DNA of 64,000 nucleotides from Takakia lepidozioides (lineage: Eukaryota; Plantae; Bryophyta): positions 55,428,001-55,492,000 of the forward strand of contig CM060731.1 of the NCBI GenBank assembly GCA_030704615.1, given 5' to 3'. Shown in pieces: positions 3,237-60,767 of the stretch. Each line of letters opens with the position of its first letter. The first letter of the stretch is position 1. A program made the position numbers and the translations under genes. Under the pieces are notes generated by a model. It made no database searches and was not told the DNA's origin. It was given only the letters and a program-made list of their open reading frames with translations.

Positions 3237-4874
3237 GGCGAGTACGGACATCCCCCTCTAGGTGCTCACCTCTGCGGTGCAGAGGTGTCCCTTTGATCTT
3301 CTCTCGCAATGTTGTCGCCCATTTCAGTGGATTCTTCGACCTCGAAGCTGTTCGCACCAACAATTCCTCCCTGTCCGGCCCAAAGCCCCATTGTTTCCCG
3401 CTCAGGAACTTGTAGTACGTGGCTTGCTGCATGATTGCTCTGTCGATGTCCTCCGTTGTGGCCGTCACTACGTCCACCAGATGTGCGGCAGAAGACGCTC
3501 GCCAGGAGGAGTGGACCGATTCTGCCATATTCGTGTTCGGCATGTCCGTGTCGGAATCCAAGCACCGCTCCTAGAAGGACACAAACAATGGTGAGGGACC
3601 AATTGAAATGTCCGTAACAGAAAGACAAATGAACGAAAATGACAGCAGCCTACCTCCCGCATGTACTGTCCGAACTGTCGATACCGAAAATGCCACCACC
3701 CCAACCAGCTGTGCAATGCTCCCAGATTGGTTGTCTCCACTGCACCTGACGTGTTCCACCAAGCCTCGATGATAGCAAACTTAACCTCCGCGTCATCAAA
3801 TGTGGGTGCATCCTTCCACGCCGTACAAAGGACACGGTGTTCAGCCTGGAATGAGCTAGCAACAAAATTTGGTAGTGTAGTGGGATAGACTCTGCATCCA
3901 ATGGAATCCACATGATCTCTCTTTCCCCTCCATTGGCACGTTGGGGTCCTCACCGTACACACGCCGCACGCTGCCCAGTTGGCCTGAGCGTTGTCTGCCA
4001 TGAATCCCCTGAAATTGGGCTCTGGCAATCCCGCCCTTGCCATCTGCTCGTTTAGCCTCCCACAGATGCATCTCCGACTGTGTGTCCTCCCTTTCATCTC
4101 GCAGATTGCAATCGTCATGAGCCTCTTGGAGTGATAGTCATAAACATGCGCACCCATAGTCACCCACTGATGGTTTGTAATTCGCTTGATGTGATCAAAC
4201 ATCACCCAAGCATTCGACAAGTTTCCAGTTGTCATGCGAGTGACCAAGTCGACTCCACTCCCAGGCCCACACGTCAACATTTTGAAAATGTAACAACGAT
4301 CGGATTCGCTGCCTTGCCCTGGAAACCTGCTACCTTGGATGTAGTCATATCCAGTCATTCGTTTCACCTCCAGGATTGAGTACATGTCCGACCCCTGCCG
4401 AACTCCTGCTTGCAAGATACGATGTGATTCCGCACATTCGGACTACAAACGTGCGAGACGGACTCCAAGAGGTCACGCATCTCGTCTTCGGTCAAGGGCT
4501 CTCGGTCGGAACCATCTTCAGACATGATTTTGCCAAGAGCAATCTTGTGGGCTGCCTTCAGCTGAATCTGCTTTGGTCTGGCTCCGGGGCTCAATTTCAC
4601 CTCCTCTTTTATGATGTCGTGTGCTTCCTGCACAGCCTCACGCATGTTGCCTCTCGCCAAGGGGTGGCAGTGGATCCCAACGTGTATGCAAGCTCTAGTC
4701 AAGTCCGGGAGCAAATGGATAACGTAATATTGCTTGGCTCTGCACATGGACATGCACGTCGGTGGTTCTTTGCAATGTGCACACTTGAAAGAACCCGCAG
4801 GAGCTTGGCTGGAGACAATGAATGGATGATGCGTTGTGCCAGTCCAATCCGTCTCGTTTCTCCGCCCTCCTTTG
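3237..4874 (-). mobile_element. MULE family 1, copy 2 (central and 3' part, includes catalytic-E region)
   Basis: Near-identical reverse copy of 1035-2159. Continues through a probable GT-AG intron (3653-3571) into DMPNTNMAESVHSSW. Its 5' end is fused to a hammerhead cleavage site at 4875. Confidence 0.8.
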
Positions 4875-4912
4875 GACTAGTTTCGCTCAGCGCGTGAGCT
4901 CATCAGTTGGAA
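4875..4912 (-). ncRNA. Hammerhead ribozyme core (unit A1), truncated at the GUC cleavage site
   Basis: Reverse complement reads ttccaa-CTGATGA-GCTCA cgcgc TGAGC-GAAA-C ta GTC, then MULE sequence replaces the stem I 3' strand. Confidence 0.8.
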
Positions 4913-5262
4913 AGAAAAGGAATGAGATACAAACCCCACCCCCCGCTTATATACTACTAGGAGTGAAATGCCTCGTGTGGACAATCTTCCAGTGGATGTC
5001 TCGTGAGGAGAAAAACCATCCAACAGATGTCTCGTACGGAGAGAATAGTCCAAAAAGTCTTGGTGGGAGAAAGTCATCCAGTGGATGAAAACAAGTTCTC
5101 GACAAGAGAGAACTAGATCCAAAGAATAAAAATCATTCAAATAGTCAATTGCATATCTCTCAAATACAACTAACTCCGTGAGTTTATGACTATGCAACAA
5201 CCAATTATGCTGAAGTTAGAGCATGTTGTGCAAAGTCGTAAGGGCTGAAACCACTTCGAAAG
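4875..5262 (-). mobile_element. Non-coding unit A1, upstream part (TATA box plus hammerhead)
   Basis: Matches 39961-40176 apart from a ~170-bp deletion in that copy. TATATAA at 4953-4947. Confidence 0.7.
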
Positions 5263-5293
5263 GGTTTAGGGTTTAGGGTTTAGGGTTTAGGGT
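5261..5293 (+). repeat. Interstitial telomeric tract (TTTAGGG)n
   Basis: agggtttagggtttagggtttagggtttagggt. Confidence 0.95.
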
Positions 5294-5295
5294 GA

Positions 5296-5787
5296 CCTTT
5301 TGAAGTTGTCGAGTTTTAGATGCGTTTGTATCCCCTACTTTAGATCATTGCATTGTTATGTGCTCTTTGTCTATACGGCATGCCATAAACTCCCTCTCGA
5401 GTAGTGCATGTGAGATCTGCATCTAAGTTGTTCCTAGTGTGTCCATTCTTTTGCAAAACAGAGATAGGGTTCTTATTATCATGTGCATCCAGTGAAATAG
5501 TTCTCATACGCACATTTGCCTCTTGCATAGGTTTGCAGTTGCATTTCAGGACACCTCGCATACTTCTATTCTAGTTTCCTGTCTCTCAGGATCTCTTCTT
5601 TCAGGTTTGATTCACAGGATCTGAAATTTTTCCAGGGGTGCATAACTGGCCCCCCCTAAAACTTGTTTGCCCGGATCGTGTTTATCTTGCACCCGGTGCA
5701 TCCGCGTTATACTCCTACACTTGTTTTGACGCTTTATGTGAACCCTAAATTTTCTTATAGTGTTAGCTGCAACACATCTTTAATCGC
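5296..5787 (+). mobile_element. Non-coding unit A1 body and 3' part, containing GTGAACCCTAAA
   Basis: Matches 15043-15449 and 17168-17378 (+) and 36078-36403, 39455-39903 and 40395-40514 (-). Confidence 0.75.
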
Positions 5788-13895: not shown

Positions 13896-15042
13896 ATGGC
13901 TCTTGTCAGTGCGAACGCTCCTGTCTGTACCGAAAATACTGCTGGATCCACCCTCAGGAGAAACTTTCAGGAGATGTTATTTCGTCGCCGATTCGGCCAT
14001 CATTGTCTAACTTACCAGCTATGGAATCACACCTCCCACCTTCATGCATGTAGCTTGAAACTATACTTTCCACTTCAATGTGCGACTTCCAATCGTCGAT
14101 GGACTCCGCATGGTGCCTGTGAGCCTTCGTCTGTCGCTATACTGAACCTTGCACTTGCCAACTTCATGCGGTATTCGATGACTCCGAATTCCTACGCTAT
14201 AGTTTGCTGTCCTCCGCAACTTGGGAGAGACTGGATCCCAAACGAGGGAGGACTTTGCAGAGTGACTGAAACTTATCTTTGTTCCAAATTCAAGCTCAAA
14301 CCGGGCACAGTTTATTTGGAAGAAGAAAGGAAGGATGTTCCTGGACAGGTTGACGAGACCATTGTCGTGCTAGGTAACGACGGAGGTTGCGGAATCGAAT
14401 GGCACGTACCCCCATCAGACACCATCCTGTACCGAGCTGTGGGAATGCCCATTCCCTTTCCGAATCAGTCGCTGCCCACACCATCCACAAAGGAGTCCGG
14501 AAACCGACAGGCGGCCACTGCCAACAGAGAGGTATGCAACGATAATCATTCCCGACCTGGACCGTCAAGACCCTCCATAGCTTCTCGTGTGGACGTATTC
14601 GACATTTCCGACGATGAAGATGAGTGCATTGAGGTCCCCATGTCCTCCACACGGTCGTTCAAATCCGAGATGGACGTCTCTGTAGGTGCTACGCATGTAC
14701 TCTCGAGCATAACTCCAACCCGGTCCATTGTGCAGCTCCTACGGCAACATCACCTCGATGGTTCTCGATCCGAGGTGGCTGCTCTTGACTATGCCAAATT
14801 TCCGGTCAGGAAGGTAAAATATCTGCCTCCCAAAGTCGATGGCAATGTCATCTTCGAGTTTCCACCTGTTACTTCCTCAAACAAGGCCTCAGGGATGTTA
14901 ACAGACATGGATCGAAAGCATGACGAACACCCCTGGTGTGTGACGAAGATCAGTAGCACGAAAATTGCTGATGGTGTTCGTGTACGATACGTCCTCTGTG
15001 CGGGGAAGCTGAGGTGCCTGAATCCCGCCTGCTTCCACTTTC
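13896..15042 (+). mobile_element. MULE family 1, copy 3 (5' part, up to the GCM-like domain)
   Basis: 14019-15042 aligns with 1-1032. It ends in ..RYVLCAGKLRCLNPACFHF, then unit A1 follows. Confidence 0.8.
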
Positions 15043-15449
15043 TTAGATCATTGCATTGTTATGTGCTTTGTGTCTATACGGCATGCTATAAACTCCCTCT
15101 CGAGTAGTGCATGTGACATCTGCATCTAAGTTGTTCCTAGTGTGTCCATTCTTTTGCAAAACAGAGGTAGGGTTCTTATTCTCCTGTGCATCCAGTGAAA
15201 TAGTTCTCATACGCACATTTTGTCTCTTGCATAGGTTTGCAGTTGCATTTCAGGACACCTCGCATACTTCTATTCTACTGTCTCTCAGGATCTCTCCTTT
15301 CAGGTTTGATTCACAGGATCTGAAATTTTTCCAGGGGTGCATAACTGGCCCCCCCTAAAACTTGTTTGCCTGGATCGTGTTTATCTTGCACCCGGTGCAT
15401 CCGCATTGTACTGCTACACTTGTTTTGACGCTTTATGTGAGCCCTAAAC
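15043..15449 (+). mobile_element. Unit A1, 5'-truncated copy ending in a telomeric tract
   Basis: Matches 5340-5749. Confidence 0.75.
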
Positions 15450-15517
15450 CCGAAACCCCTAAACCCTAAACCCTAAAACCCTAAAAAACCGTAAACCCTA
15501 AACCCTAAACCCTAAAC
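15442..15517 (-). repeat. Interstitial telomeric tract, (CCCTAAA)n on +, with variants
   Basis: ccctaaacccgaaacccctaaaccctaaaccctaaaaccctaaa... Confidence 0.95.
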
Positions 15518-15680
15518 TTGTGAGGCTATCCAAAGTCTTTTATCTTGGAATGTTTTGTGCTTTGTGACTATGCACAACGTGCTACACTATTGACGGGCAA
15601 GCGGGCCCTCTTGGTTCTGAAACTTGAGCATTCGCATTATACTCAAGCTCTAAGCTTTGAGGGTGTTCTAAACCCTAAAC

Positions 15681-16658
15681 TTCATGAGGGCTTTTTGAAA
15701 TTTCCTAGTTAGCGTCCTTTGACAGACCTATGGTATGTTGGAAGAGGGCACGGAACTTGCGTTCCTATCTAGTTCGTGCTATGTTACAAATCTAGAGGCT
15801 AGTTGTATTTGAGATATGCAGTTAGCTTCTAGTTTGGATGATTATCCATTTTGGAGAGATCATTAGGATGTTTTATATCTAGATTTTCATGCGTTGGATA
15901 TTTCTCCGCTGCCGAGAAAACTTTGGATGTTTTTCATCTAAGTTTTCATGTGTTGGACGATCTCTCCAGCCAAGACAATTTTGGATGTTTTCCATCCATT
16001 AGGTATTTTCCCTCCCCCCCCGAGACAAGTTCACTTTCCGCAGTATATAAGCGGGGTGAGGGGTACATATTGTATCTCTTTTCCTTCTCTTTCCCACTGA
16101 TGAGCTCAAGCGCTGAGCGAAACTAGTTTGGGGATTATAGAGATTCGCTTTGCTGCATCTTGTGTTCTTGTCTCTTTGTCTCATTGGCGGCGTTGTTGTT
16201 GTTGTTGAGATTTGATCTTCTGCATAGTTCATCGCATTCATTTGTTTTGTGTCTATTGTAGTGCATGTTTTAAACTCTTTTTCGAGTGTTAGATCTCCTT
16301 CTAAGACTGTTCTTTAGTGTGTCTATTCTCTTTCTTAGAGATAGGTTACTATTCTCATGTCCTTACAGTGAATTAGTTTCATCACACACACTTGCCTCTT
16401 GCATATCTTTGCATTTGCACTTTAGAACGTTGCAACATCACTCCCACTCTGTTCTATTCTAGTTTTCTGTGTCTCAGGATCGATTCTTTTAGTTTTGATT
16501 CACAGGCTAGATATTTCTACAAGTTTTCTAAGGTGTCCATAACTGGCCCCCCTAAAAACTTGTTTGCACTTTGCTACTAATGCACTCGGTGCATTCGCGG
16601 CTCGAACTCTGTTGCACTGCTACATGTATATGTTTCCACTCTTTTGTAGACCCTAAAC
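15681..16658 (+). mobile_element. Non-coding unit A2 (diverged relative of A1) with TATA box, hammerhead and telomeric 3' end
   Basis: Colinear similarity to A1 (tagttgtatttgaga, tgtctcaggat, gattcacagg, cataactggcccccctaaaa). TATATAA at 16044-16050. Ends gtagaccctaaa. The 5' boundary is approximate. Confidence 0.7.
16091..16134 (+). ncRNA. Minimal type I hammerhead ribozyme (unit A2)
   Basis: ttccca-CTGATGA-GCTCA agcgc TGAGC-GAAA-C ta GTT-tgggga. Stems I and II pair; stem III is the palindrome ACTAGT. Confidence 0.85.
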
Positions 16659-16758
16659 CCATAAACCCCAAACCCTAAACCCTAAACCGGTGCATCCGCG
16701 TTGTACTGCTACACTTGTTTTCACGCTTTATGTGAACCCTAAACCCTAAACCCTAAAC
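16651..16758 (-). repeat. Two telomeric tracts flanking a ~50-bp 3'-terminal piece of unit A1
   Basis: CCCTAAA tracts at 16651-16688 and 16735-16758 enclose ggtgcatccgcgttgtactgc...tatgtga. Confidence 0.9.
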
Positions 16759-17168
16759 TTGAAGGTGGGGCATATAAGTTTTCCAACTTAGGGGTTGAGA
16801 CTTGACCCTATGTTTGTGAGTGCCTTGAGCGCATGCTTGCCCATAGTGAGCAAGATTTTTGTCGCTAAACAAAGAGAAGCAAACATAAAAAAGCTTACGG
16901 TTGGAGCGAAAGTGCCTCATTCTTCAATTAGAGAACTTTATCTCGTGAGGGCGGGAGTCATTGCATAAGACATAATAGTCTTATAGCATCCCTTTAGGCA
17001 CGATAGGCGCACTTTGTATGCATTTGTCTTGGTTTCCATTGCATTTGTATTTGGGTCCGAACCGGCCCCCCTTAAAATTTACTGTGTCTTTTTCCAGTAT
17101 TTTTTCTACTTTTTGTTACCTTTGCAAGCCTTTCTTGACCACCCTAAACCCTAAAAATCCTAAACCCT
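16759..17168 (+). mobile_element. Unit B 3' part plus telomeric tract
   Basis: Matches 39196-39434 and the reverse of 37283-37665. Ends ttgaccaccctaaaccctaaaaatcctaaaccct. Confidence 0.8.
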
Positions 17169-17378
17169 TCTAGTTTCCTGTCTCTCAGGATCTCTCCTTT
17201 TCAGGTTTGATTCACAAGATCTGAAATTTTTCCGGGGGTGCATAACTGACCCCCCTAAAACTTGTTAGCCCGGATCGTGTTTATCTTGCACCTGGTGCAT
17301 CCGCGTTGTACTGCTACACTTGTTTTGACGCTTTATATGAACCCTAAACTTTCTTACAGTGTTAGCTGCAACACATCA
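17168..17378 (+). mobile_element. Unit A1 3' fragment
   Basis: Matches 5568-5778. Confidence 0.75.
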
Positions 17379-18259
17379 TCGAAATTCGTTCAATGGGCCA
17401 ACGGATGGTTGCCCATCCAAATGATTTTCGTTCGCTTTGAAACTTGGCCAGGGTGTTCAATGTACCCTCTGATACGTCCCAGTGTAATACGAGATCAATC
17501 GAAAAATCGTTCGATTGTCCAATGAGGCGTTCACTTGTCATCTGGTTTTTGTTCAATGCGAAAAAGAAATCTTGCAATGCGTGCACGACTATTGCACCCA
17601 TTGAACGGATGTGGTTGAAGCCCCTCTTTTGCCCGTATGTGTGCGACACATGTGCGAAGACACAACAGACGAATAAATCATTTGTCTCCCCATCGACGCA
17701 AGCCATTCCACAATTTAATTGAATTTAAATTTATTTTAAGCCAATAAATAGGTTTGCGCTGCCTTTCAGTGGGGGTTTCTGGCACGTATCGATTTTGTTT
17801 TTGGCTCAATTTTGTTCTGCGGCTTCCAGCATCCCACGACTACTCCCCCGCCAAAATTTGGACCAATAAAAAATGCCCCAAAAAAAAAGTGTTCTCTTCG
17901 CTCACTATTGCGAAACTCTCTATGAAGAGTGCATGAAGTAAAACACAAATCAAGTTTGGAGTGCAAAATAGGGAAGAAACTGTGGTTTTGGGTCCAAATG
18001 AATTTTGATCGCTCCCAAATTTGGCACGCACGTTGCATATGGCTACATTACACGCCCCATTCAAAAACGGAATGAAAAAAAAGTCACGAGCACACGAAAC
18101 ACAGTCCAACAGGTCCCAAAGCAATAGCAGCTCCAACAGAATACATTCAACGGGTGAACGGATGGTTGCCCATCCAAATCATTTTTGTTAGCTTCCAAAC
18201 TTTGCCAGCACGTTCCAAACATCCTCTCACAGGTCTCGGACTAATATCAGATCACTATG

Positions 18260-19648
18260 TAGAACATATCCATTGAAGAAATGGCGGACATGCCATCTTG
18301 CAATTTGACAGAGACTGTGCACAACGCATGGTTGCAACAGTCTGGGAAACGCGGTCGGGATTTGTATGTGGCAACAACAGATGATCTGATACGTGCCTTG
18401 CAACAACAAACCAGATACCGAGATTTCTTGCGAGGTGGGGTTGGTGGCAAAGGTCCGGACAAACTGGAGTTGATGTTGCGTGCTGCAAATAGATCTGGGG
18501 ATCCAAGCAAGATAGCACGGGCGGTGAGCATGTATGCCCAGGGAACGCCACTTGTTTCAAGAGTTCCACATCTTGAAGGGGAGGAGAGATTCGGCTACTG
18601 TAAGAGGAAATTGAACACCCAACCTGGTTCGGAATCCGATTCGCACAGGGCAGACCGTGATAACTTCTCGAAGCCTCGTGTTCCCCTGTATGACAAATCC
18701 ATTTCCGGAATCTCCATTGTGGAGGAACCTCCGACACGACGGCAGGCTCTAGCATCAAACAATACCACTGAAATGGTGCAGGAGAGAAACTACCCCCTTC
18801 ATGTGCTGAAGTCCGCATGCCCTGACCACGTTTGGCACATAAAACACACAAATGCAGGGTCTCGTGTAAAATGTACAGCAATCAGGGCAACTAATTTCGA
18901 GAAATGTACTTCATCTATATCCAGGGGCGGTGCCCGGACTCCTGCTCCTACTTTCACGGGTTTGATGCGTCCATACGGCCAACCAGAAGCCAAGAACCAC
19001 AAGTTCTGGTTTTGCGCAGACGATTGTGGTAGATGTGTGCATGGAACTGTGCGACCTTCCGTGGTGATGAAGCCAGCTCCTCCAACCATTTGGCCCGTCA
19101 AGATGGGAACACATCTCACAAGTCAGGAGATTGCAATGGTGGAGGAGGTAGGCTTTTCCCTTGCGAGACAACCCCAACTGCATGCATGTGCTTCTACTTC
19201 TGCGTCCTCTCGGGTCCCTCCGACAAATCCTGACTTGTGGCCAACCAAACGAGATGGAAAGCTGGTTTGGCGTTTCCCTCCAACCGCTGAACATTTCGGC
19301 AAAGTGGAGTCCGCAAGAATGCTCCAAGCTCGTGTTGCAAGCACCACGGAAGTACCCGATTCAGGGTATGGTTGGGTGTACACAATGATCACTTCGACAT
19401 TTGCTGTTCATGACAGGGCCTATGACGTCACGGTTTCCAATTTCCCCAATTGCACATGTCCTGATTTTGTGAATATGCTATTAACCAGTTTGGGCAAGAG
19501 AGGAAAAATTCATACCTTGCAAACATTTGTATTACATATTTTTGAAGAGGATGGTTTGCGATCCCAAGCGTGACAATTTCGTTCACCAGGCCACGCTGAG
19601 TTTCAACGAGGTCGATAATCTGTTGCAGCGGGATTCAACACATAGGTA
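18260..19648 (+). mobile_element. MULE family 2 transposase, C-terminal half with SWIM finger
   Basis: DMPSCNLTETVHNAW..DLYVATTDDLIRA..GPD..LMLRAA is paralogous to 3202-3561. SWIM CTCPDF..(frameshift ~19505)..PCKHLYYIF. Confidence 0.78.
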
Positions 19649-21047: not shown

Positions 21048-22900
21048 TCATCCTATCATTCTAGATTTAACTAGGAATGAACTCAGCTTTCGCGGATTCC
21101 TCCAACAAATCATCGCTCGAGGAAGAAACCGAAGCTCTGGGACTTGCTGAAGCAACTCGTGGAGTCTAGGGTTTAGGGTGGCCCCCAAGTTCAAGGCTCG
21201 AGTGTACGAAGAGTAGTCGAGCTTAAGAACAAGGGGGGCCCGTTTACCCTCAACTGCGCGTTGCGTCTGTTGGTCGAGTAGAGCGGATCTGAGGTCGTAG
21301 GAGATCTTGGTGAAGCAACTCCGGATGATCGCCGCCGGATAACCTCGGGCTCGAAGACGTTTGTAAAACAAAAGTCGCAAATGGTTGAACCCTTGGATGG
21401 TGCTTTCTCGTATTACGTACCGTTGGAGCTCGCCGATGATGAAAGCTTTCTTTTGGTGATGTGGATGCCACGAGGACCAAGGCAAGTATTGATACTTGCT
21501 ATGGGCCTTTTGATGACATCTAGTAGAGAGCCGTCGAGTTTGGATGAAGTCGTCTCCTTTGAGGAAGGTGATATCCAAGATGTCGGCGGACGTCGGGCTT
21601 ATGGCGGTCGTGATTTTGATGCCATCGAACATGGAACCGTAGTTCCGTAACCAGGACCGGAGTCTCTTTTCGGAGCCTACCCAGATGCCAAAGCCGTCGT
21701 CGATATAGCGCTTAAGATAAAGCAGCTCTTGCTCCGATGGGCACACGTACTCCATGTACATCTCCAACCGACAGAGGAACAAACAAGCGTAAACAATTGC
21801 AAAGTTGTTCCCCATGGCCGTCCCGCGAATTTGGTGCCAAAAACTACCATTGAACTCAAGGTAATGGTGTTTCAAGACTAATCTAGCGAGGGTCATGATC
21901 AGGTCTTTTTTGTGTTTGGTGAAATTACCTCCAATAGCACATTCGAGCTCATACAAGCCGAGCTCGGTGATGATGCTGGGATATAGAGATTCCACGTCAA
22001 ACGTAAAAAGAAGAGCATGCGAGGGGACCTCGAGTTGGGAAACCTCTCGAAGAAGCGTGAGAGAATCAACCAAATGAGTGGGTTCCTTGAGAAGTACCGG
22101 AAGGAGTTGGTGATGGAGCCAAATTGAAGCATGCTCGAAGATGTAGTTGTTGTAGGAACAAATGGGTCTTCCAACAAGCACGGGTTTGTGCACCTTCGGA
22201 ATGAAGTACAAAGCACAAGCTCGAAAGTCCATGGACGACCGAGGGCGTTGGCAGATGTAATTCCATTATTTGGTGGAGATCGCAAACCTGTAGATTGGAT
22301 GGCAAGCTAGCACCTCCAACCTCGACCAAAGTTCTTCCCACGGTACGGAATCCACGGGACGATAAACTTCGGTGTCTGAGAGTTGCCGCATCGCCTCTTG
22401 CATGTACCAAGACTTGTCCATAAGCACAAGACCAAGATTTTTGTCGGCCGGCTTGATGACAAGGTCCGGATCCGACCTCAATCTTTTGAGAGCAAGTCTC
22501 AAGTGTCTCGGCAGACAAGGTCGTGCATTGCGGGCGATTCGATCCAAACGGCTAGACAAAAGATCATTACCTTCTCGAATGATGGCCTCGAGCGGTTGAG
22601 ATTCCACTGGCGGATTGAATGATGGATTCGGAACGCGCCAAAGAGGAACCTCGTCGTTGTCTTTGCCGGAGAAGAACGTTTGCAACCTCAAGCTTCGAGC
22701 AAAATTGTTGAATTCGGTGATGATTGAAGATCGGGAAGGGGGAAGAGGACGAGGAATGTAATTGAGACCAAGGCCCAGGAGTTGTCGCTCCGCAAAGGAG
22801 AGAACCCTCTTGCTATAGTTGTGGATAGCAGTGTTGGTGACCCTGCATTCCACTTGGGAGGGAGTCTTCCTAGTAAAGAGCAACAAAGCGTAAGCCTTCG
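21048..22900 (-). CDS. Penelope-like element reverse transcriptase, no GIY-YIG endonuclease; one in-frame stop at 22266-22268
   Basis: LGLGLNYIP, IKPADKNLGLVLMD, YFIPKVHK, GRPICS, TFDVESLYPSI, QIRGTAMG, RYIDD, thumb HQK..YQYLPWSSWHP..K..GEL.RY, RARGYP. ORFs 22266-22886 and 21048-22232 share a frame. Ends LVKSRMIG* without an endonuclease. Confidence 0.92.
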
Positions 22901-22903
22901 GGT

Positions 22904-23735
22904 CTACAAGCGGGTACTAGAAGAGACTCCTCGTGCACCCCCGCGTTTGTGAGGAGGTACGTATGGCCGCTTCGTCGTCGTCGTCGTCGTCGCACCCTTC
23001 GTCGTGGCCGGTTTTCCGTTGACCCTCGCTGAAGGTTTTCGGCCTCCCGTACCAGAACCGGTTGTGCGGTTCGGGCCTGACCTCTTGTTGAAAGAGGTAG
23101 GTGACGCAGCAGAACGGGTGGAGACCCGGATACCTTTCTGCTGCTTGCCGTTTCCCGACTTTCCGCCAGGATTCGCCTTAGGCTTACTAGCCGGTTTGGT
23201 CCCAAGCTTCTGGGCCTTAGGTTTCACCTGGATGGAATTCACCACCTTCTTCACCTCCTTGAGTGCTTCCTTGATCACCTCGCGTTTCACGAGGGTAGCA
23301 ATGGACGGTTCCACAGGGAGGGTCTCCGCTTCTTCCATAGCACCTTCCCGAGCAACGTTGCGAGCGGCGATAGCTGCGGCCTTGCTGACGTCGGAAAGTT
23401 GTTTGTGAATGAGAAATGCATCTACTTGAGTAACAAAGAGATTGCTAAGATGAAGATGCCACGACTCGATGGAAGACTTAGACTTGTCACCTATCAAATT
23501 TCGGCCACTGGCATTGCACAGTGTAAGCTCGGGTGGCCCTCTAGATACCCGCACAACACTGGCGACGGGGTTTGTACTCCTCAGAAGACGGCCCTTCACA
23601 GCAGTACTTGGTGGTTCAACATTTGTTTGCGCCTTCACAAATCGTGCCTCTGGTTGCCCCAACACGGTGATAATCTCGACAAAGCTGCTATGCTCCAGCA
23701 ACACACCAACATGCCATGGGAGCAGAGGCTCAATG
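22904..23735 (-). CDS. Probable ORF1 of the Penelope-like element (helical segment, then basic K/R/G/T-rich tail)
   Basis: Co-oriented ORF ending ~17 nt before the first in-frame TTG of the RT. Contains SIATLVKREVIKEALKEVKK followed by a basic tail. The true start is uncertain; the annotated N-terminus runs through a G/C-run tract. Confidence 0.6.
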
Positions 23736-23812
23736 GAGTGGAGGGGGAGCGGGCGGGGGCCCGGGCTGGGTGCGGGGCGGAGGGGGTGGGGGTGGGGCCG
23801 GGGGGTGGGGAT
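23735..23812 (+). other. G-run tract, potential G-quadruplex
   Basis: About ten runs of 3 or more G in ~75 bp. Confidence 0.6.
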
Positions 23813-25466
23813 TTGACAGGCGGGCTCCGGCAGCGCAGGGCTCAGGCAAGGAGGGCCCACGGTCTCGCGCATTTAACTCCATGTCTAGTGTAAACCAAAT
23901 TTATACATGCACAATGTTGAATGGCATACGTTGTGAGTTAATGTCAAACTGAACGAAAAGCGAGGGATGGACTGAAACTTCTGGACGGAAACTCGTGAAC
24001 GGAAACGTCAACAGATGAATGAGATTTGGATGAAGTTTCGATGTAAGATTCTGGCCGTTCGATCGGATTAGGGTAAGAACGGACGGTCATGACATGCTGT
24101 TTTAATTTAGGTTTTGGGGGGCGCATTACAATCCCCCAGTGCTCTTCATTTTTCATTGTTTCCTCGCTCTATCTCTCTCGCTCTCTCTCTCTCGCTCTAC
24201 TGTGTCTCGTAATCTTTGAGCCTGTGTACCTCTGTTGCTTGCATTCTAATTGCTTACACAATTCTGAGCCTGTTTGGAGGAGATGGAATGTTGTCAAAAG
24301 CTCGGCTAGCCTGTACTGATATACCGCTCTTGCTGTGGCTTGATATTAGCTTCTTTCAGGAACTGAGCCTGGTTTGTCCATCCATTACTTCGATTGATAG
24401 CATTGATCTGCACAACGAATTACTTCACCTCAATGTATTTTGTGAGCCCGCTCAATCGCGACTGTAGCAGAGAGGGAGAGGAGACTTTCGACATTTGAAG
24501 GAGTTTTGCGGACTCCGGTACCAGAGAAAAATCTTCCTCTCTTCCGTTTTCTATGAGATAGATAATCCGCATAGTCTTGACTACCTTATTCAGAGAACAA
24601 TGAAGCTAGAGTAGGTTAATTTATCTTTTCACAGACCGTTGCTTCTCATTAGCTAGCTAATTTCATTTGCAGTGAACGAGCAGTATTATCTGCATTGGCT
24701 GTGAAGGATTTTTTGCACCATATCAAGATAACTCCATCCTTGCATGCGCACCCATATAAGAGTGGCGAAGTTTTGGAACGATGGAGACATTGAGAGGACA
24801 TTGCAACTCTGTTAATCTGATGTGAATGAGAGAATATTAATGTGCAGCACCTGGTGCAGGAACACTAGTGCAGAGCGTTTCGATTGAGACAGGAGCGGAT
24901 TGGCGGATGAATTGAGCGACAGGAGTTGCAATAAGGCTAAACCTCTACTTACACGTAAGTGCTTCGACCTTGTTGATGTGTTTGAAACTAATTTATTTGG
25001 TTCTTGAAAGGAGGAAGGTCTCCTAGTGGAAGGTCTCCTAGTTGTTTTCGTTGAGTTTTTGGATCTTGATACTGCCTTCGTTCAGTTAGAGTTAGTACCA
25101 ACTGTGCCTTGGGAGCTCATGGTCCCTCTGGCCCTGGGGTAGTTATGGTAGAGTACTTCTTGTGTGGCAGATGACTTGGGGAAAAAGCTGTTAACATTGC
25201 GGGCTGTCTATTCAGGTCTTCTCCCATCGTGTATCTTAATAAAATACTATCAAGGTTGGTCAGCCTGCAAGATACAGCTCCAGATATGGCGGATACACCG
25301 GGGGCTGCTATTTCACGAGCGGCATGAGCATGAGCGGAAAAAAACACTCTAGGTCCTCACGCGAATTTCTCCCCTCCTGAGCGCTCGATCTGTGCCCGTC
25401 TTTCTTTCTTTACACCTTGCGTTCGCGGAGTTCCTTCCCGCCGCAGTGCTAGTCTGATAGCAACTC

Positions 25467-28560: not shown

Positions 28561-29022
28561 TGCAGTTTATCTGTTTCGTCATTGAGCCTTTGGCTGGACT
28601 CGTTTTTGTTAGCTCTGAGTTTGTGAATCAACGATCTTTCAGAATATTGTGTCAAACCATTCCTAAGTGCTGAGGGTTTGCAGATTAGTTTTTTTCTCAG
28701 CTATGGCTACTGTAAGGGTTGAGCACCTCAGCACACCTCGAGTATTCTTGGTTGGTCACATACGTCTGTTGTGGGGATACTTCTTTTGTAGCACCTACAG
28801 CAGGTATCAGGGTTTTGCTTTACTTCCTGGTTTTGTTGCTTTTCTTTGCTTTTCTGTCTTGAGTTCGAGTAGTTTAAGCAGTCAATGAACACAAGGTCAG
28901 GTGCTTAAAGTTTGCAAATAATTTATTTATTCCGTAGGATGGAATCTGCTCAGATTCAAGATTGGATTGTCGCACCCGCAGCTTCCATTCGCTTCCCTCC
29001 CAGCAATTTCAAGCTCTCTTTA

Positions 29023-29053
<31 letters not shown>

Positions 29054-34160: not shown

Positions 34161-36055
34161 ATTTTGATATGTGCAGAATGTTGCTACGAAGAACTTAGTT
34201 CTTGGAGACAAGTGTTGCTGGTTTAATTTTGGAAACCCATGAACTCATTCTGCCATCTGTGTACTCTAGGAGAATGAACCAGAGATTCTTGTACCCAGAG
34301 TGTATAGAGGTTTTTTGGTTTCAAGTGTCCAATAGATCTGTACAGACAATGACCAGCATTTTTTCTTAATGTTTAGGAGAGTTCTTTGTTGGCCTTACTG
34401 GATTTTTTTGGACTCTGCAGATGGGCCTTGGCCATGACAGCCTCAGTTAGGGGACTCCATGATTTCAAAATTCGAGTCAGCAATCCCTTTGATGCACTCT
34501 TATCTTGTTCTTCCGGCAGTCATGTTGGATCATGTTGAAGTTGACCATTGAGGCAGGATTTTGACCTCCGCAACTGCATAGGTGGTTTCACCAATTCTGA
34601 TAACATCCCTGTTCTGGGCTTCCCATGTAATCGTTGATTCCATGTTGAACTCACAGTTCACTCTTCAAGCTAGCTTCCATCAGATAATTGTAGATGTGGA
34701 TAAAGACAAAACTAAAAACTCTGTTTCAGTTTTCGCTCGAGTAAACAAGGTATTCATTATTGTTGATGTGTCATTATTATTCCTCGGAACAAAACAAGAA
34801 AGACAGAGATGAATGGACTTCATTGTATATGAAACCAGAGGCTGGTTTATAGAGCAGTACTTTCAATTTGACAACAACGTTGTTTCATGCTATAAATTTC
34901 AAATGCTAAAAATTTCACTAAGTTTATGAAAAACAAAGATATTGCTTCAATGCTGAATCGAAATGGGGGGGTTTAGGGTGAAGTACCCTAAAACTTTTGA
35001 GGACTCGGTGGTTTGTTTAGATTAAAATCTATAATGAATCAGACCACGATTTCTTGAAACTCTAATAGGAGGGGGCACTAACAAGCCAACCCCTACAAGT
35101 GTCTACTTAAAGGTAATCCATCAGTCGCACCAAGATAATATTTGCAAAGGACACTCTGAAAGATAGCCCTCTGAACTCACAATTCAAATTCGAACCCCAA
35201 AGTTCAAGACATGTGGAGAGGTTCAGAAGTTTATTGCATGTACTAACCATGCTAAGTAGTATAAGCAGCAGTAGAATGATACAATTTCTAAATTGACCGT
35301 ACAAAATTTTAGGCTTTCTCATTGGACCAACAATGCCCAAGGATGTGAAACCACAATCGGGAAAAAGGGAAAGTGAATGATGGCCCTCAAATCATGTAGA
35401 AGGAACTAATGAAATTTAGTCTTCAACTTGACTTGGTGCAAGAGCCAGACTCCCTTAGCCTGTAAAAGTAGACAAGGGTAGAAACACATATAAATGAGTA
35501 GAACTGACCAAGAATTGCCAAGAGTCCCTAGAAATCCTGCACCAAAAACTTGCACAATGAGTAACTAAGAGAACATGCCAAAATTAACTGCCTTGAACAT
35601 TACATTCAATTTTCCAAGCTCATTCTATAGAATACCAATACCTTTTTAGCTTACTAAAAAATTGAATATGAAACATAAACAACCACAACGAGCTCTGAGA
35701 GATCCGACCTCCAAAGCTCCAAACCAGGGCGAGGTCTACATGCAAACAAGGGCATTTAGCATAATTGTATCACGAAGCTTGGCAGGTCATTCAAAATTGG
35801 GTGTCATCATTCGGTTGACCTAATCACTCTTAAATACAAGTGGTGATCGCTCAACAAATATACAAGATTATGTAAGGATCTCAACAACAGTACTGAAGGG
35901 ACCCAAACCTCTTTGCCATCGTTTATTGCAGTTACCACCTCTTGCAACCTTTCAACCTCTACCTCTTTACTTGCCACTTTCTACCTGCTCTAACCTAAAC
36001 CCTAAACCTTAACTCATTCCTTATTCTATAATGTGAAAAGCTAGTTTGCAACATT

Positions 36056-36403
36056 TTTAAGGGTTTAGGGTTCAGGGTTCACAGAAAGTGTCAAAACAAA
36101 ATGTTGTGCGAGTACAACGTGGATGCACCGGGTGCAAAATAAACACAATCCGGGCAAACAAAGTTTTAGGAGGCCTGTTATGCACCCTGGAAAAATTTCA
36201 GATCCTGTGAATCAAACCTAAAAAGAGAGATCCCGAGAGACAGGAGGAAACTAGAATAGAAGTATGTGAGGTGTCCTGAAATGCTGAAATGAATTGCAAA
36301 CCTATGCAGAGGCAAAAGTGCGTATGAGAACTATTTCACTGTATGCACAGGAGAATATAACCCTATCTCTGTTTTGCAAGAGAATGGACACACTAGGAAC
36401 AAC
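36056..36403 (-). mobile_element. Telomeric tract plus diverged, 5'-truncated unit A1
   Basis: gggtttagggttcagggttcacagaaagtgtcaaaac..., the reverse complement of the A1 3' part. Confidence 0.75.
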
Positions 36404-37257
36404 ACTTTCACTGTAGTGCTGGATGAAGCGTAGGTGTTGGGAAGGAAAAAATGTAAAATGACTATGAATCCCTACGAGACGAAAGAGCTAAGGTCCATTT
36501 TTCTCCGTTGATCAAAGCCCTAGTGGGGCCATCTATGGCATTGGCCAGAAAAAAAGCATTTGGAAAGTATTGTTGCTAGTACAGGTTTTGTAGCTTTGAA
36601 GCTGGAAGAGGGACATGGACATAGGTTCGCTGATTGCAAAAGAAGGGGGGTGGTGGCCGGTTCAATTTCTTCTGCTCCATTTTCTTCATGGACAGATGTG
36701 CGTCGTTCAGGTTCTGAAATTCTGCAGCGAGTACCTGAAGCTAGAGGATGATCATATGGAGGACAATGCACAGTATCTGCTGGAAAAGTTCAGAGGCCGT
36801 CGAAGGTGTTTGGTAAGTTGTGTCGAGCGCCTTCTGAGGAAGGCTAGAGGAAGATGGGATATAACGGTAGTAGACAACTATTTCAAGGAGATCACAAGCA
36901 ACACCAATGACAGCACTTCCATTTATTATGCTGTGAGCGCTCTGTGTGGAGCAAAAGGAACATTTGTCCTGAAAGAAGAATCGTTCAATGGTGCTTCCTT
37001 GGTGCAAAGAATAGGAACCTCCTTTGCCTATGCAGGGAGGGGAGAAACATACCGTTTCAAACGGACGGAGATATGACTTTGCTCGAGTGTGTGGCCTTGG
37101 ACAGCTACACCATTCAACAGGTTCCCAATTCACTTTCTCTATAGTCGAACCGACAGTCCATCATAGCATCATGAACTATTTGACGATCAACCATTCATTT
37201 GAGAAATCACTTAAAGACTACATGGTTGATTGCAAGGATGATCCCAGTGCAATGGGT
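36404..37257 (+). pseudogene. Fragment of a probable CR-type P-loop NTPase gene
   Basis: FTVVLDEA*VL (Walker B-like) at ~36405-36440, then YLLEKFRGRRRCLVSCVERLL and LLECVAL. Stops and frameshifts present. Ends at a telomeric tract. Confidence 0.4.
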
Positions 37258-37963
37258 AGGGTTTAGGGTTTAGGGTTAGGGTGGTCAACAAAGGCTTGCA
37301 AAGATAACAAAAAGTAGAAAAAATACTGGAAAAAGACACAGTAAATTTTATGGGGGGCCGGTTAGGACCCAAATACAAACGCAATGGAAACCAAGACAAA
37401 TGCATACAAAGTGCGCCTATCGTGCCTAAAGGGATGCTATATAAGACTATTATGTCTTATGCAAGGACTCCCGCCCTCACGAGATATAAGGTCTCTAATT
37501 GAAGAATGAGGCACTTTCGCTCCAAACGTAAGCTTTTTTATGTTTGCTTCTCCTTGTTTAGCGACAAAAATCTTGCTCACTATGGGCAAGCATGCGCTCA
37601 AGGCACTCACAAACATAGGGTCAAGTCTCAACCCCTAGTTGGAAAACTTATATGCCCCACCTTCAAAAAGAGGTTCGTACCTCTAAGGAAGAATGGGAGG
37701 GATTACCGCATAAGGTCATCGACGAGAAGGTTAGGTCGGCAGAGGCTTGCGCATGCCCATAGTCCTCTGATCGCTCGAGATGAACTCGAGGGAGGATCAA
37801 CCAAGTCCCTTCTCTCCGACCATGGGGCGTACGACAGGGGGAACCGTGTAGTCGGGGCTAAATTAGCTTGCCCGACACGATTACCATATACCCCCAGCCA
37901 CCTTCCCCATTGTAAAGCGGTGGCTAAGATGGCGTCAAACGGAAGGCTCTATACGCCCGTGCT
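37256..37963 (-). mobile_element. Telomeric tract (37256-37282) plus 5'-truncated unit B
   Basis: gtagggtttagggtttagggttagggtggtcaac..., the reverse complement of unit B. Confidence 0.8.
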
Positions 37964-39207
37964 TCTCGTCACGAAGTCCCAACCAAGCAATCCACCCATT
38001 CTACACATCAACAGAGATCCAAACCCACTTATGTGTCTATCTCCTTCTATCGAATTTGTAAACTACATTTGCTGCAAGAGAGCAACAGCCATGAGCATAA
38101 ATGACCTGTTAGAAGCACGCATGTGACCATCTCTGTCATCTGCTAGTCAGTACAGTGTTCGTAAGAGAAATGAAGTGAAATGAAATGAAATGGTGTTTTA
38201 TAACGTCCGCGGAAAGCTCAGAAGAAAGAGAGAAAGAAGCATGAGATTGCAATGACCTATCTGAGGGGAAGAGGTCACCGCTGCGTTTTTTCACCATGCA
38301 GAAAAATTTGACAAGAGTCTCTACGAACTCTGCTATAGGCAACTCCTCAATTTCCTTCTCCCTTCTCCCTGTCATCGGGGTTTTGTCATCGGGATAATTT
38401 AGGTTTTCTTGTGGCGGTCTGAGTTTCTTAGGGCTCTGCGGCCTGAGTTTGCTGATAGTGAGGTTTAAGTACTTAGGGTTTGTTGTCACCAGATCGTTTC
38501 AAGGTTATTGAAAGCTTTGCAAACTTTGTGAAGGCAGGCAGAAGCTCCACTTGCCTTCACTCCATAAATTTTTGCAAGGCTTTCGTAGCAAGGGTTGTAG
38601 GGTATGTCTTCTTGTACTTGGGAATTATCCCATATCGTTTGCACATAGTGAGGGTGTTTTTCTAGTATATAAGGATAGGCTTGGCTCTTAGGACTTCATC
38701 TCTTGGTGTTCCACTGATGAGCTTGAGCAATCAAGCGAAACTTGTTTGGAATAAAACACCTTAACTCTTTTTGTGTCTCCACACTTAGAGAAGTCGAGAG
38801 TCTAGTCCTTGCCCGCCCGGGCAATTTGGATCGAAGGGGTGCTCGGCTCCAAGGGGAATCCCAACCCTTGGATACTTCCGAGGTCTTTTTTCTTTCCGAA
38901 GCACGGGCGTATAGAGCCTTCCGTTTGACGCCATCTTAGCCACCGCTTACAATGGGGAAGGCGGCTGGGGGTATATGGTAATCGTGTCGGGCAAGCTAAT
39001 TTAGCCCCGTCTACACGATTCCCCCTGTCGTACGCCCGATGGTCGGAGAGAAGGGACTTGGTTGATCCTCCCTCGAGTTCATCTCGAGCGATCAGAGGAC
39101 TATGGGCATGCGCAAGCCTCTGCCGGCCTAACCTTCTCGTCGATGACCTTATGCGATAATCCCTCCCATTCTTCCTTAGAGGTATGAACCTCCTTTTGAA
39201 GGTGGGG
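37964..39207 (+). repeat. Inner inverted repeat arm (partner 43717-44955)
   Basis: Matching ORF translations on opposite strands (38136-38489 vs 44435-44776; 38480 vs 44259). Confidence 0.88.
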
Positions 39208-39434
39208 CATATAAGTTTTCCAACTAGGGGTTGAGACTTGACCCTATGTTTGTGAGTGCCTTGAGCGCATGCTTGCCCATAGTGAGCAAGATTTTTGTCG
39301 CTAAACAAGGAGAAGCAAAAATAAAAAAGCTTAGGGTTGGAACGAAAGTGCCTCATTCTTCAATTAGAGAACTTTATCTCGTGAGGGCGGGAGTCCTTGC
39401 ATAAGACATAATAGTCTTATTGCATCCCTTTAGG
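38619..39434 (+). mobile_element. Unit B (TATA at 38666-38672, hammerhead), broken at 3' and capped by TTTAGGG
   Basis: Matches 40512-41296 and 43717-44305 in reverse. catccctttagg|gtttaggg here versus catccctttagg|cacg in the uninterrupted copies. Confidence 0.8.
38705..38760 (+). ncRNA. Minimal type I hammerhead ribozyme (unit B)
   Basis: ggtg-ttcca-CTGATGA-GCTTGA gcaa TCAAGC-GAAA-C tt GTT-tggaa..cacc. 6-bp stem II closed by a GNRA loop. Confidence 0.87.
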
Positions 39435-40514
39435 GTTTAGGGTTTAGGGTTCAGGGTTCACATAAAGCGTCAAAACAAGTGTAGCAGTACAACGCGGATG
39501 CACCGGGTGCAAGATAAACACGATCCGGGCCAACAAGTTTTAGGGGGGGCCAGTTATGCACCCCTGGAAAAATTTCAGATCTTGTGAATCAAACCTGAAA
39601 GGAGAGATCCTGAGAGACATGAAACTAGAATAGAAGTATGCGAGGTGTCCTGAAATGCAACTGCAAACCTATGCAAGAGGCAAATGTGCGTATGAGAACT
39701 TTTTCACTGGATGCACAAGATAATAAGAACCCTATCTCTGTTTTGCAAGAGAATGGACACACTAGGAACAACTTAGATGCAGATCTCACATGCACTACTC
39801 GAGAGGGAGTTTACGGCATGCCGTATAGACACAGAGCACATAACAATGCAATGATCTAAAGCAGGGGATACAAACGCATCTAAAACTCGACAACTTCAAA
39901 GGGTGAGACCACGAGGCAAGATCATGCAAAGTAGTGAAGCCAAATCTTTATAGACCCCAGACTAGTTTCGCTCAGCGCGTGAGAAAGTCATCCAGTGAAT
40001 GAAAACAAGTTCTCGACAAGAGAGAACTAGATCCAAAGAATAAAAATCATCCAAATAGTCAATTGCATATCTCTCAAATACAACTAACTCCGTGAGTTTA
40101 TGACTATGTAACAACCAATTATGCTGAAGTTAGAGCATGTTGTGCAAAGTCGTAAGGGCTGAAACCACTTCGAAAGGAACGCACAACTCGTAAGAGCTTT
40201 GCACACGCAGACCATCGCGCAACCATCGTCTTGCTAAAGCCTGCAGCTGTGTTGTCCTGAACGTGTCCAACCACGATTCCCACCTTCCGACCTCCAAGAC
40301 GAAACACGGCTCGGTCTTCGTATTGTTGCCTCATCACATGAATGAGCAGCTTGGTCAAAAGAATGAAGATCAACATCTGCCTCCATTACGTGAAGGCGAT
40401 TAAAGATGTATTGCAGCTAACACTGTAAGAAAGTTTAGGGTTCACATAAAGCGTCAAAACAAGTGTAGCAGTACAACGCGGATGCACTGGGTGCAAGATA
40501 AATACGATCCGGGC
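39429..40514 (-). mobile_element. Telomeric tract plus more than one monomer of unit A1 (tandem junction), with TATA and the 5' half of the hammerhead deleted
   Basis: The A1 3' end occurs twice (39455 and 40433). Hammerhead 3' half ..TGAGC GAAAC ta GTC tgggg at 39983-39955. Confidence 0.75.
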
Positions 40515-41296
40515 AAGGACTCCCGCCCTCACGAGATAAGGTTCTCTAATTGAAGAATGAGGCACTTTCGCTCCAACCGTAAGCTTTTTTATGTTTGCTT
40601 CTCCTTGTTTAGCGACAAAAATCTTGCTCACTATGGGCAAGCATGCGCTCAAGGCACTCACAAACATAGGGTCAAGTCTCAACCCCTAGTTGGAAAACTT
40701 ATATGCCCCACCTTCAAAAAGAGGTTCGTACCTCTAAGGAAGAATGGGAGGGATTACCGCATAAGGTCATCGACGAGAAGGTTAGGTCGGCAGAGGCTTG
40801 CGCATGCCCATAGTCCTCTGATCGCTCGAGATGAACTCGAGGGCGGATCAACCAAGTCCCTTCTCTCCGACCATCGGGCGTACGACAGGAGGCATCGTGT
40901 AGTCGGGGCTAAATTAGCTTGCCCGACACGATTACCATATACCCCCAGCCGCCTTCCCCATTGTAAGCGGTGGCTAAGATGGCGTCAAACGGAAGGCTCT
41001 ATACGCCCGTGCTTCGGAAAGAAAAAAAGCCTCGGAAGTATCCAAGGGTTGGGATTCCCCTTGGAGCCGAGCAGCCCTTTGATCCAAGTTTGCCCAGGCG
41101 GGCAAGGACTAGACTCTCGACTTCTCTAAGTGTGGAGACACAAAAAGAGTTAAGGTGTTTTATTCCAAACAAGTTTCGCTTGATTGCTCAAGCTCATCAG
41201 TGGAACACCAAGAGATGAAGTCCTAAGAGCCAAGCCTATCCTTATATACTAGAAAAGCACCCTCACTATGTGCAAACGATATGGGATAATTCCCAA
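40512..41296 (-). mobile_element. Unit B directly downstream of RT copy 2 (pLTR-like position)
   Basis: Same strand as the RT, starting ~165 nt after its stop codon. TATATAA at 41248-41242. Confidence 0.75.
41154..41209 (-). ncRNA. Hammerhead ribozyme (unit B)
   Basis: Exact reverse complement of 38705-38760. Confidence 0.87.
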
Positions 41297-41459
41297 GGCA
41301 ATAATAATGCCACTAAAGCACTAATTTAGCCTCCAAGTCAAAACTGCATTAATTAGTCAATGGTCCAAATTAATTGTTGGAACCCTTTGACTTTAACATC
41401 AACACTAGGGCTATCAAAGAGGCAAAATTAATAATGCTAGGGACATTTGCACTACAAAA

Positions 41460-42587
41460 TCATCCTATCATTCTAGATTTAACTAGGAATGAACTCAGCT
41501 TTCGTGGATTCCTCCAACAAATCATCACTCGAGGAAGAAACCGAAGCTCCGGGACTTGCTGAAGCAACTCGTGGAGTCTAGGGTTTAGGGTGGCCCCCAA
41601 GTTCAAGGCTCGAGTGTACGAAGAGTATTCGAGCTTAAGAACAAGGGGGGCCCGTTTACCCTCAACTGCGCGTTGCGTCTGTTGGTCGAGTAGAGCGGAT
41701 CTGAGGTCGTCGGAGATCGTGATGAAGCAACTCCGGATGAACGCCGCCGGATAACCTCGGGCTCGAAGACGTTTGTAAAACAAAAGTCGCAAATGGTTGA
41801 ACCCTTGGATGGTGCTTTCTCGTATTACGTACCGTTGGAGCTCGCCGACGACGAAAGCTTTCTTTTGGTGATGTGGATGCCACGAGGACCAAGGCAAGTA
41901 TTGATACTTGTTCTGGGCTTTTTGATGACATCTAGTAGAGAGCCGTCGAGTTTGGATGAAGTCGTCTCCTTTGAAGAAGGTGATATCCAAGATGTCGGCG
42001 GACGTCGGGCTTATGGCGGTCGTGATTTTGATGCCATCGAACATAGAACCGTAGTTCCGTAACCAGGACCGGAGGCTCTTTTCGGAGCCTACCCAGATGC
42101 CAAAGCCGTCGTCGATATAGCGCTTAAGATAAAGCAGCTCTTGCTCCGATGGGCACACGTACTCCATGTACATCTCCAACCGACAGAGGAACAAACAAGC
42201 GTAAACAACTGCAAAGTTGCTCCCCATGGCCGTCCCGCGAATTTGGTGCCAAAAACTACCATTGAACTCAAGGTAATGGTGTTTCAAGACTAATCCAGCG
42301 AGGGTCATGATCAGGTCTTTTTTGTGTTTGGTGAAATTACCTCCAATAGCACATTCGAGCTCATACAAGCCGAGCTCGGTGATGATGCTGGGATATAGAG
42401 ATTCCACGTCAAACGTAAAAAGAAGAGCATGCGAGGGGACCTCGAGTTGGGAAACCTCTCGAAGAAGCGTGAGAGAATCAACCAAATCAGTGGGTTCCTT
42501 GAGAAGTACTGGAAGGAGTTGGTGATGGAGCCAAATTGAAGCATGCTCGAAGATGTAGTTGTTGTAGAAACAAATGGGTCTTCCAAG
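41460..42587 (-). pseudogene. Penelope-like RT, copy 2; 5'-truncated and capped by telomeric repeats
   Basis: Highly similar to 21048-22175. Stops at tcttccaa|gtttagggtttaggg. Confidence 0.9.
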
Positions 42588-42632
42588 TTTAGGGTTTAGG
42601 GTTTAGGGTTCAGGGTTGAGGGTTCAGGGTTT
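42587..42632 (+). repeat. Telomeric tract with TTCAGGG/TTGAGGG variants
   Basis: gtttagggtttagggtttagggttcagggttgagggttcagggttt. Confidence 0.95.

Positions 42633-51361: not shown

Positions 51362-51397
<36 letters not shown>

Positions 51398-60731: not shown

Positions 60732-60767
<36 letters not shown>

Follow-up and report, generated by a model that had tools for sequence, protein, structure and literature searches.

Retroelements that form or target head-to-tail telomeric arrays are known from Drosophila, where HeT-A, TART and TAHRE replace telomerase, and from Bombyx, where the endonuclease of SART and TRAS cuts telomere repeats. For another group, the endonuclease-deficient Penelope-like elements (PLEs), a telomere-extension model was reportedly put forward by Gladyshev and Arkhipova in 2007. 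In the model as published for these elements (PMC3846280, PMC6431247, PMC8557442, PMC4209133), DNA synthesis by endonuclease-deficient PLEs is primed where a chromosome end or a break lies exposed, and the truncated 5' end then receives telomeric repeats (PMC3846280). Furthermore, 5'-truncated, telomere-capped head-to-tail arrays have been described for the PLE family (PMC6431247, PMC3846280). Here, we describe a locus of the bryophyte Takakia lepidozioides, contained in a stretch of 64,000 nucleotides (nt) that is referred to as the window and whose own numbering is used throughout (GenBank assembly GCA_030704615.1, contig CM060731.1, positions 55,428,001 to 55,492,000 of the forward strand). 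At 15043-17378 the window holds a chain that is very probably a decayed array in which 3' tails of endonuclease-less PLEs, each truncated at its 5' end, follow one another head to tail and are joined by telomere repeats. It is part of this reading that the tails, which belong to the types A1, A2 and B, come from at least three families of such elements.

The elements of the window share with the endonuclease-deficient PLEs of Selaginella moellendorffii a plant host with TTTAGGG telomeres, a reverse transcriptase (RT; the homologue is 49% identical) that lacks an endonuclease, and hammerhead ribozymes of type I, which in Selaginella are found in pseudo-LTRs, where LTR stands for long terminal repeat (PMC4209133). 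One Selaginella element, L001, is flanked by C-strand telomere tracts on its sense strand and bears a telomere-like motif inside the end of its second open reading frame (ORF2), as is also the case here; a simple pattern search found no hammerhead in it. Selaginella is nevertheless another host, and the families have diverged. The Athena elements, or Terminons, of bdelloid rotifers are likewise devoid of endonuclease and combine reverse-complement telomere repeats at the 3' end with a hammerhead in the 3' region (PMC6431247, PMC8557442). In Terminons, however, the repeat stretch lies directly downstream of the hammerhead, whereas the distance from hammerhead to terminal tract in the window is ~520 nt in A2, ~530 nt in A1 and ~860 nt in B; in addition, Terminons measure tens of kb and the units of the window ~1 to 4.4 kb. 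The Coprina elements of fungi and protists are also endonuclease-less, telomere-associated PLEs with hammerheads, but these are reported to have a long helix III and to be active as monomers (PMC4209133), in contrast to the minimal helix III, of the metazoan and Selaginella type, seen in the window. Finally, the telomeric elements of Drosophila and Bombyx are non-LTR (LINE) retrotransposons, unlike the elements of the window, which are PLEs alternating with telomerase-type repeats.

Units, tracts and ends of the chain

The chain was mapped by reading positions 14700-17700 and by repeat mapping within the window. It consists of five units and five tracts of C-strand telomere repeats, the last of which has only 10 nt (Table 1). 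As a preliminary description of this DNA had claimed, all recognisable units point the same way, each matching its reference copies on the plus strand. The claim that the units keep their 3' ends and differ in 5' truncation is also borne out. Each of the families A1, A2 and B has a single fixed 3' end, in one register with CCCTAAA or (CCCTAAA)n, the nucleotides that precede the first repeat being TTTATGTGA(A/G) in A1, TTTTGTAGA in A2 and TTGACCA in B. The 5' ends vary, the A1 units retaining 399, 46 and 171 nt and the B unit 382 nt. Reverse-complement telomere repeats are present on the sense strand at every A1, A2 and B 3' end, and the telomere 13-mer CCCTAAACCCTAA is found 16 times in the window, against 0.01 occurrences expected from shuffles.

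The tracts themselves are made of two parts. Variant repeats (CCCTGAA, CCCGAAA, CCCATAAA and others) cluster beside each unit's own 3' end, and the side that touches the following unit always closes in canonical repeats; in tract 1, for instance, variants occupy the first two thirds and the final three repeats are canonical. The variant CCCTGAA recurs beside unit 3' ends elsewhere in the window (36060-36079, 39429-39458 and 42587-42632), and in a related element of another sample (L005, 2443-2566) it alternates five times with CCCTAAA within one tract. Where a tract gives way to the next unit, AAAC is followed directly by TT at four independent junctions (15517, 16758, 17349 and 42587). Viewed on the G strand, repeats would have been added at these places as G-TTTAGGG after a complementary DNA (cDNA) ending in AA.

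In the preliminary description, a separate piece of 165 bp and a telomeric stretch at 15668-15680 stood between the first tract and A2. The order A1, A2, A1, B, A1, with tracts at the joints, is retained, but the separate piece and the stretch behind it are not, which leaves five units instead of six. A sensitive BLAST search of the RT element against the window gave a match at 15590-15774, and an alignment with the window copy, Selaginella L001 and a related contig, L002, shows that the 165-bp piece, the 13-nt word that follows it and the first part of A2 run collinearly with the 3' end of the RT ORF. From 15518 onwards, frame 0 matches ORF2 residues 296-368 with a local protein score of 138 (shuffle maximum 47), and past a frameshift the alignment of unit 2 runs on to the end of the ORF with a score of 71. 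The alignment indicates that the piece, the word and A2 are a single unit. Since the word lies inside a decayed ORF2 that reads through it, it is not an added tract, and the 13 nt CTAAACCCTAAAC, once considered as a junction tract, are the codons Leu-Asn-Pro-Lys of this ORF. A copy of telomerase RNA was likewise rejected here as the source of the 165-bp piece, this being an in-frame ORF2 remnant. An 8-mer at 15517-15524 that matches CTCACAAG overlaps the start of the remnant; as the sequence from ~15522 onwards forms its Arg-Gly-Tyr-Pro codons, much of this 8-mer is element sequence here.

The word at 15668-15680 corresponds in position to 21167-21179 and 41579-41591 of the window's ORF2 copies and to the motifs of L001, L002 and a further sequence, L008. 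This telomere-like word at the ORF end (CTA AAC CCT, Leu-Asn-Pro) is seen in the window copies, at 6615-6630 of L001, at 2123-2133 of L002 and in L008. Its nucleotide sequence is conserved in five plant-type lineages, with proteins of just 49-70% identity, and it is not found at that position of ORF2 in a related family whose host has CCCTAA repeats. The idea that a full-length A1 starts at the ORF-internal motif was dropped, its first ~45 nt scoring not above shuffles against either A2 or ORF2.

Table 1. Features of the chain, the associated elements and the second chain (window coordinates)
Feature	Position	Strand	Remarks
Unit 1, A1 tail	15043-15441	+	94-95% identity to A1 at 5340-5749; canonical 3' end
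Tract 1	15442-15517	+	76 nt, C-strand telomere repeats
Unit 2, 3' part of second PLE family	15518-16649	+	1,132 nt
TATA-like box	16044-16051	+	~45 nt upstream of A2 hammerhead; read directly
A2 hammerhead, type I, minimal helix III (predicted)	16089-16135	+	predicted cut after 16128
Tract 2	16650-16688	+	
Unit 3, A1 terminal 46 nt	16689-16734	+	
Tract 3	16735-16758	+	canonical repeats throughout
Unit 4, B terminal 382 nt	16759-17140	+	96.7% identity to 37278-37965 (-)
Tract 4	17141-17168	+	
Unit 5, A1 terminal 171 nt	17169-17339	+	
10-nt tract	17340-17349	+	
Flank F	17350-17377	+	28 nt
Autonomous endonuclease-less PLE	21048-23872	-	nearly intact
ORF1	22904-23872	-	322 amino acids
ORF2	21048-22886	-	~620 amino acids; one in-frame stop at 22266-22268
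Second PLE copy, 5'-truncated inside ORF2	40513-42586	-	begins directly after tract 42587-42632
A1 upstream-copy hammerhead (predicted)	4876-4955	-	cut at cleavage site
B hammerhead (predicted)	38706-38753, plus copies		type I; predicted cut after 38746
Second chain	36056-43033	mostly -	A1, B, inverted B, near full-length A1, A1 fragment, B + RT element, B fragment
C-strand tracts of second chain	36060-36079, 37257-37281, 39429-39458, 40433-40442, 42587-42632	-	

The elements, their hammerheads and their relatives

The RT partner of these tails is present in the window as an almost complete element with two ORFs, interrupted by a single stop codon. Its ORF2 carries YIDD together with the N-terminal motifs KPADKNLG and LGxKxIP (LxLGxKxIP), which we take to be marks of PLEs, and ends 29 residues past a conserved CW motif near the C-terminus. 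The 53 homologues of ORF2 (450-660 amino acids), including proteins of Cryptomeria japonica, Selaginella moellendorffii, Ginkgo and Closterium, carry DUF8422, HTH_animal and a faint RVT_1, and the GIY-YIG domain (PF01541) is found in none of the 53. The nearest ESM Atlas clusters are rotifer (Rotifera) proteins with the same domains. A local Pfam search with the RT ORFs gave no match even at E = 10, and a single-sequence search of the PDB with the RT gave none either; the RT family profile matched only RTs in the PDB, which were prokaryotic and weak matches. Judged by their motifs, domains, 3' repeats, hammerheads and truncated arrays, the elements appear to be endonuclease-deficient PLEs of the Athena/Coprina type.

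In the 5'-truncated copy at 40513-42586, a stop codon at 41460 is followed by ~265 nt of untranslated region (UTR) and a TATA box, after which a hammerhead leads into the B sequence. Because B is thus contiguous with an RT ORF, it is the 3' tail of an autonomous endonuclease-less element. Unit 2 comprises a decayed ORF2 C-terminus and a 3' UTR, then a TATA box with a hammerhead behind it, and a tail; it is the tail plus ORF2 remnant of a second PLE family. A1 has ~70% identity to A2 and behaves as its non-coding relative: the near full-length A1 at 39452-40177 (-) is devoid of ORFs and is made up of an upstream region of ~390 nt, a hammerhead and ~530 nt of tail. Like the non-LTR retrozymes of animals, which are non-autonomous PLE derivatives (bioRxiv 10.64898/2026.07.22.740005), A1, with its ~970 nt, is non-coding, bears a hammerhead and is related to a PLE tail; it is also more abundant in the window than the coding element. 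It differs from these retrozymes in ending in telomere repeats, within telomere-joined chains.

The motifs in A1, A2 and B are predicted type-I hammerheads with a short helix III, a type already described for PLEs, Selaginella included (PMC4209133). They have in common CUGAUGA and GAAA cores, a GUU or GUC cleavage triplet (NUH), a helix II of 5-6 bp and a minimal helix III that is closed by a loop of 2 nt and in the A copies is the palindromic ACUAGU. Helix I has 6-7 bp in the A2 and B hammerheads, the A1 copy, being cut at the cleavage site, having been left unscored for this helix. The A2 hammerhead has both cores, a GUU triplet, a helix I of 6 bp and a helix II of 5 bp. Compensating changes in helices I and II are seen across a set of nine distinct hammerheads, drawn from the window and from related contigs, and the TATA box of unit 2 has a similar counterpart upstream of the B hammerhead.

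At 4876, on the minus strand, the A-type upstream region ends at most 2 nt from the predicted cleavage site of its hammerhead and is joined there to one arm of an inverted repeat of 1.1 kb (1034-2159 and 3752-4876), a boundary consistent with an RNA end generated by the ribozyme. Plant LTR retrozymes carry two type-III hammerheads in direct LTR-like repeats, together with a primer-binding site and a polypurine tract, and are mobilised by elements of the Ty3 type. The units of the window are not of this kind, each having a single type-I hammerhead with an open helix I and telomere repeats in place of LTRs at its ends; the comparison covers hammerhead topology and unit ends, primer-binding site and polypurine tract not having been searched for.

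Related loci in other organisms repeat this layout. Three contigs (L002-L004), with an RT of 56% identity, show one and the same unit of 3.9 kb in permuted form, as expected of tandem arrays. Their order is ORF1, ORF2, 253 nt, hammerhead, ~430 nt, a short C-strand tract and the next unit, and the copy at 40513-42586 matches it. In Cryptomeria, a distance of 4,330 nt separates two identical RT genes. A metagenome scan added 78 further loci; in many of them ORF1 is closely preceded by a tract, the RT is followed after 250-420 nt by a hammerhead, and another tract lies downstream. When tracts were counted over 81 related loci oriented by their RT, 95 showed the C-strand and 2 the G-strand on the RT sense strand. 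The rule of polarity between unit and telomere, which the preliminary description had put up for testing, therefore holds across the family.

Formation of the chain

A decayed array of telomere-joined PLE tails could have grown as follows. The element RNA would bear C-strand telomere repeats past its 3' end, which would pair with the G-rich 3' overhang of a chromosome end or of a healed break. The element RT would then extend the paired 3' end; the cDNA would halt early or erode, telomerase would add new G-strand repeats onto its end, and the next RNA would be primed on these. The former end would have lain to the left of 15043, with the A1 at 17169-17339 as the oldest unit and the A1 at 15043-15441 as the youngest, and the array would later have become internal and been reshaped by duplication and by joining to other DNA. 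A tract start in fixed register with the 3' end of its unit is expected if this part was copied from RNA, and canonical repeats on the side of the next, older unit are expected of telomerase synthesis on a truncated cDNA. In addition, PLE RTs can initiate internally on multi-copy RNA (PMC11167929), so that a tract within a read-through transcript would be a plausible place for priming.

Several observations weigh against such a history. At its left edge, 15043, the 5' truncation point of unit 1 abuts MULE-like DNA without a tract, and this breakpoint is common to the copy at 1032. Three copies exist of the junction at which the A1 3' end is followed by AACCCTAAAC and F, at 17340-17377, 5741-5787 and 40396-40442 (-). 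The locus is interstitial, with at least 37 kb of sequence to its right and at least 49.95 Mb to its left, and does not form a present-day terminus. As to the ribozymes, the best local Rfam matches are to hammerhead families but fall far below gathering thresholds: the best match of the A2 hammerhead is Hammerhead_HH9 with 17.9 bits, and such weak matches came only from scans of short stretches, a scan of the whole window having listed no hammerhead.

The threefold junction bears on a possible, if doubtful, alternative, in which the PLE tails are real and the chain was assembled by block copying, that is from read-through RNA, by template switching of the RT, or by segmental duplication and unequal recombination. 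The three copies retain at least 455, 171 and 84 nt of A1 and 28-38 nt of F, and A1 lengths as unequal as these imply that duplication at the DNA level or a co-transcribed flank acted here. Duplication is also evident from the paralogy of 14018-15448 to 1-1032 plus 5340-5749 and from the inverted repetition of 37963-39207 at 43718-44956. Moreover, hammerheads remain uncut within unit 2 and within the A1 at 39452-40177, which means that read-through RNAs were copied, and the multi-copy nature of PLE RNAs with internal RT start (PMC11167929) is compatible with this route. Block copying agrees less well with junctions 1 to 4, each of which is unique within the window, with tracts that are unlike one another in length and variant content, and with the presence of three families that differ in their truncation points. 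The preliminary description had proposed at least five rounds of cDNA addition, each capped by telomere repeats. The polarity, the ends and the make-up of the tracts fit that proposal, for five units and not six, but separate rounds are unproven, and at the chain itself block copying or template switching fits as well as five separate rounds.

Growth of the chain from an internal double-strand break instead of a true telomere, with one broken end extended by PLE cDNAs and telomerase and later rejoined, is unlikely. Such an origin would accord with the priming of endonuclease-deficient PLEs at double-strand breaks (PMC3846280) and with the arrangement of the two chains of the window, which diverge, the one at 15-17 kb pointing left and the one at 36-43 kb pointing right, and are both terminated by non-telomeric DNA; F, the 28 to 38 nt past the 10-nt tract, could then be a co-transcribed flank copied when the break was primed. 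Several rounds would nonetheless require an end that persisted over cell generations, during which the acentric partner would be lost, and an old subtelomere rearranged at a later time gives the same picture. An assembly artefact, with collapsed or mis-chained repeats in a repeat-rich region, is highly improbable, as the window contains no Ns, every junction is distinct, the copies are 92-97% identical and not identical, and the same architecture is found in independent assemblies of other organisms.

The ORF-internal CTAAACCCT of the plant clade, which is sometimes longer, could conceivably be a second site for docking or for seeding telomerase and, together with two-part tracts of element-templated variants and canonical repeats, would make such chains direct, ordered records of single healing events. 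The chains might then also report the register in which the plant telomerase starts, given that AA|GTTTAGGG is read on the G strand at five independent junctions; we regard this extension of the model as improbable.

The second chain, its surroundings and the wider family

A second, less regular chain of opposite polarity, also announced by the preliminary description, was recovered mostly on the minus strand (Table 1), with one inverted B at 38617-39434. Sequence unrelated to PLEs lies between its units at 36404-37256 and 42633-42952 and includes an ORF of 153 amino acids; captured DNA between units is known from rotifer arrays in the literature. At the left edge of this chain, two short telomere tracts of opposite polarity (35994-36008 and 36060-36072) stand 51 nt apart. 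The clearest exception to the polarity rule in the window is a 33-nt tract at 5261-5293, from which the units on both sides point away and which has G-strand polarity for the A1 of the plus strand. The three copies of the junction of A1, 10-nt tract and F run on into three unrelated sequences. Pfam searches gave no match for 42624-42932, 18281-19573 and 13896-15107. Fragments of large-subunit ribosomal RNA are found at 28925-29052 (-), 51300-51419 (+) and 60710-60829 (-), within a repeat of ~6 kb that has three copies in the window; in Selaginella, PLE families that insert at one site of the 28S ribosomal DNA have been described (PMC8557442).

According to a review of 2025, telomere-associated transposable elements are rare in plants, and Selaginella provides its Penelope-like example (PMC12477314). 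The window adds a further plant host for telomere-joined, endonuclease-less PLEs, and brings together a nearly complete autonomous element with its own tails and with a relative that is non-coding. The mechanism that the chain suggests has already been published and the chain is not mechanistically new; growth of chromosome ends of this kind has been described in spike moss, rotifers and fungi, of which the window is a new example. Chains such as these are natural records of the extension of broken or shortened ends. Furthermore, the homologues in Cryptomeria, Ginkgo and Closterium suggest that, within the green lineage, the family has a broader distribution than the literature records.

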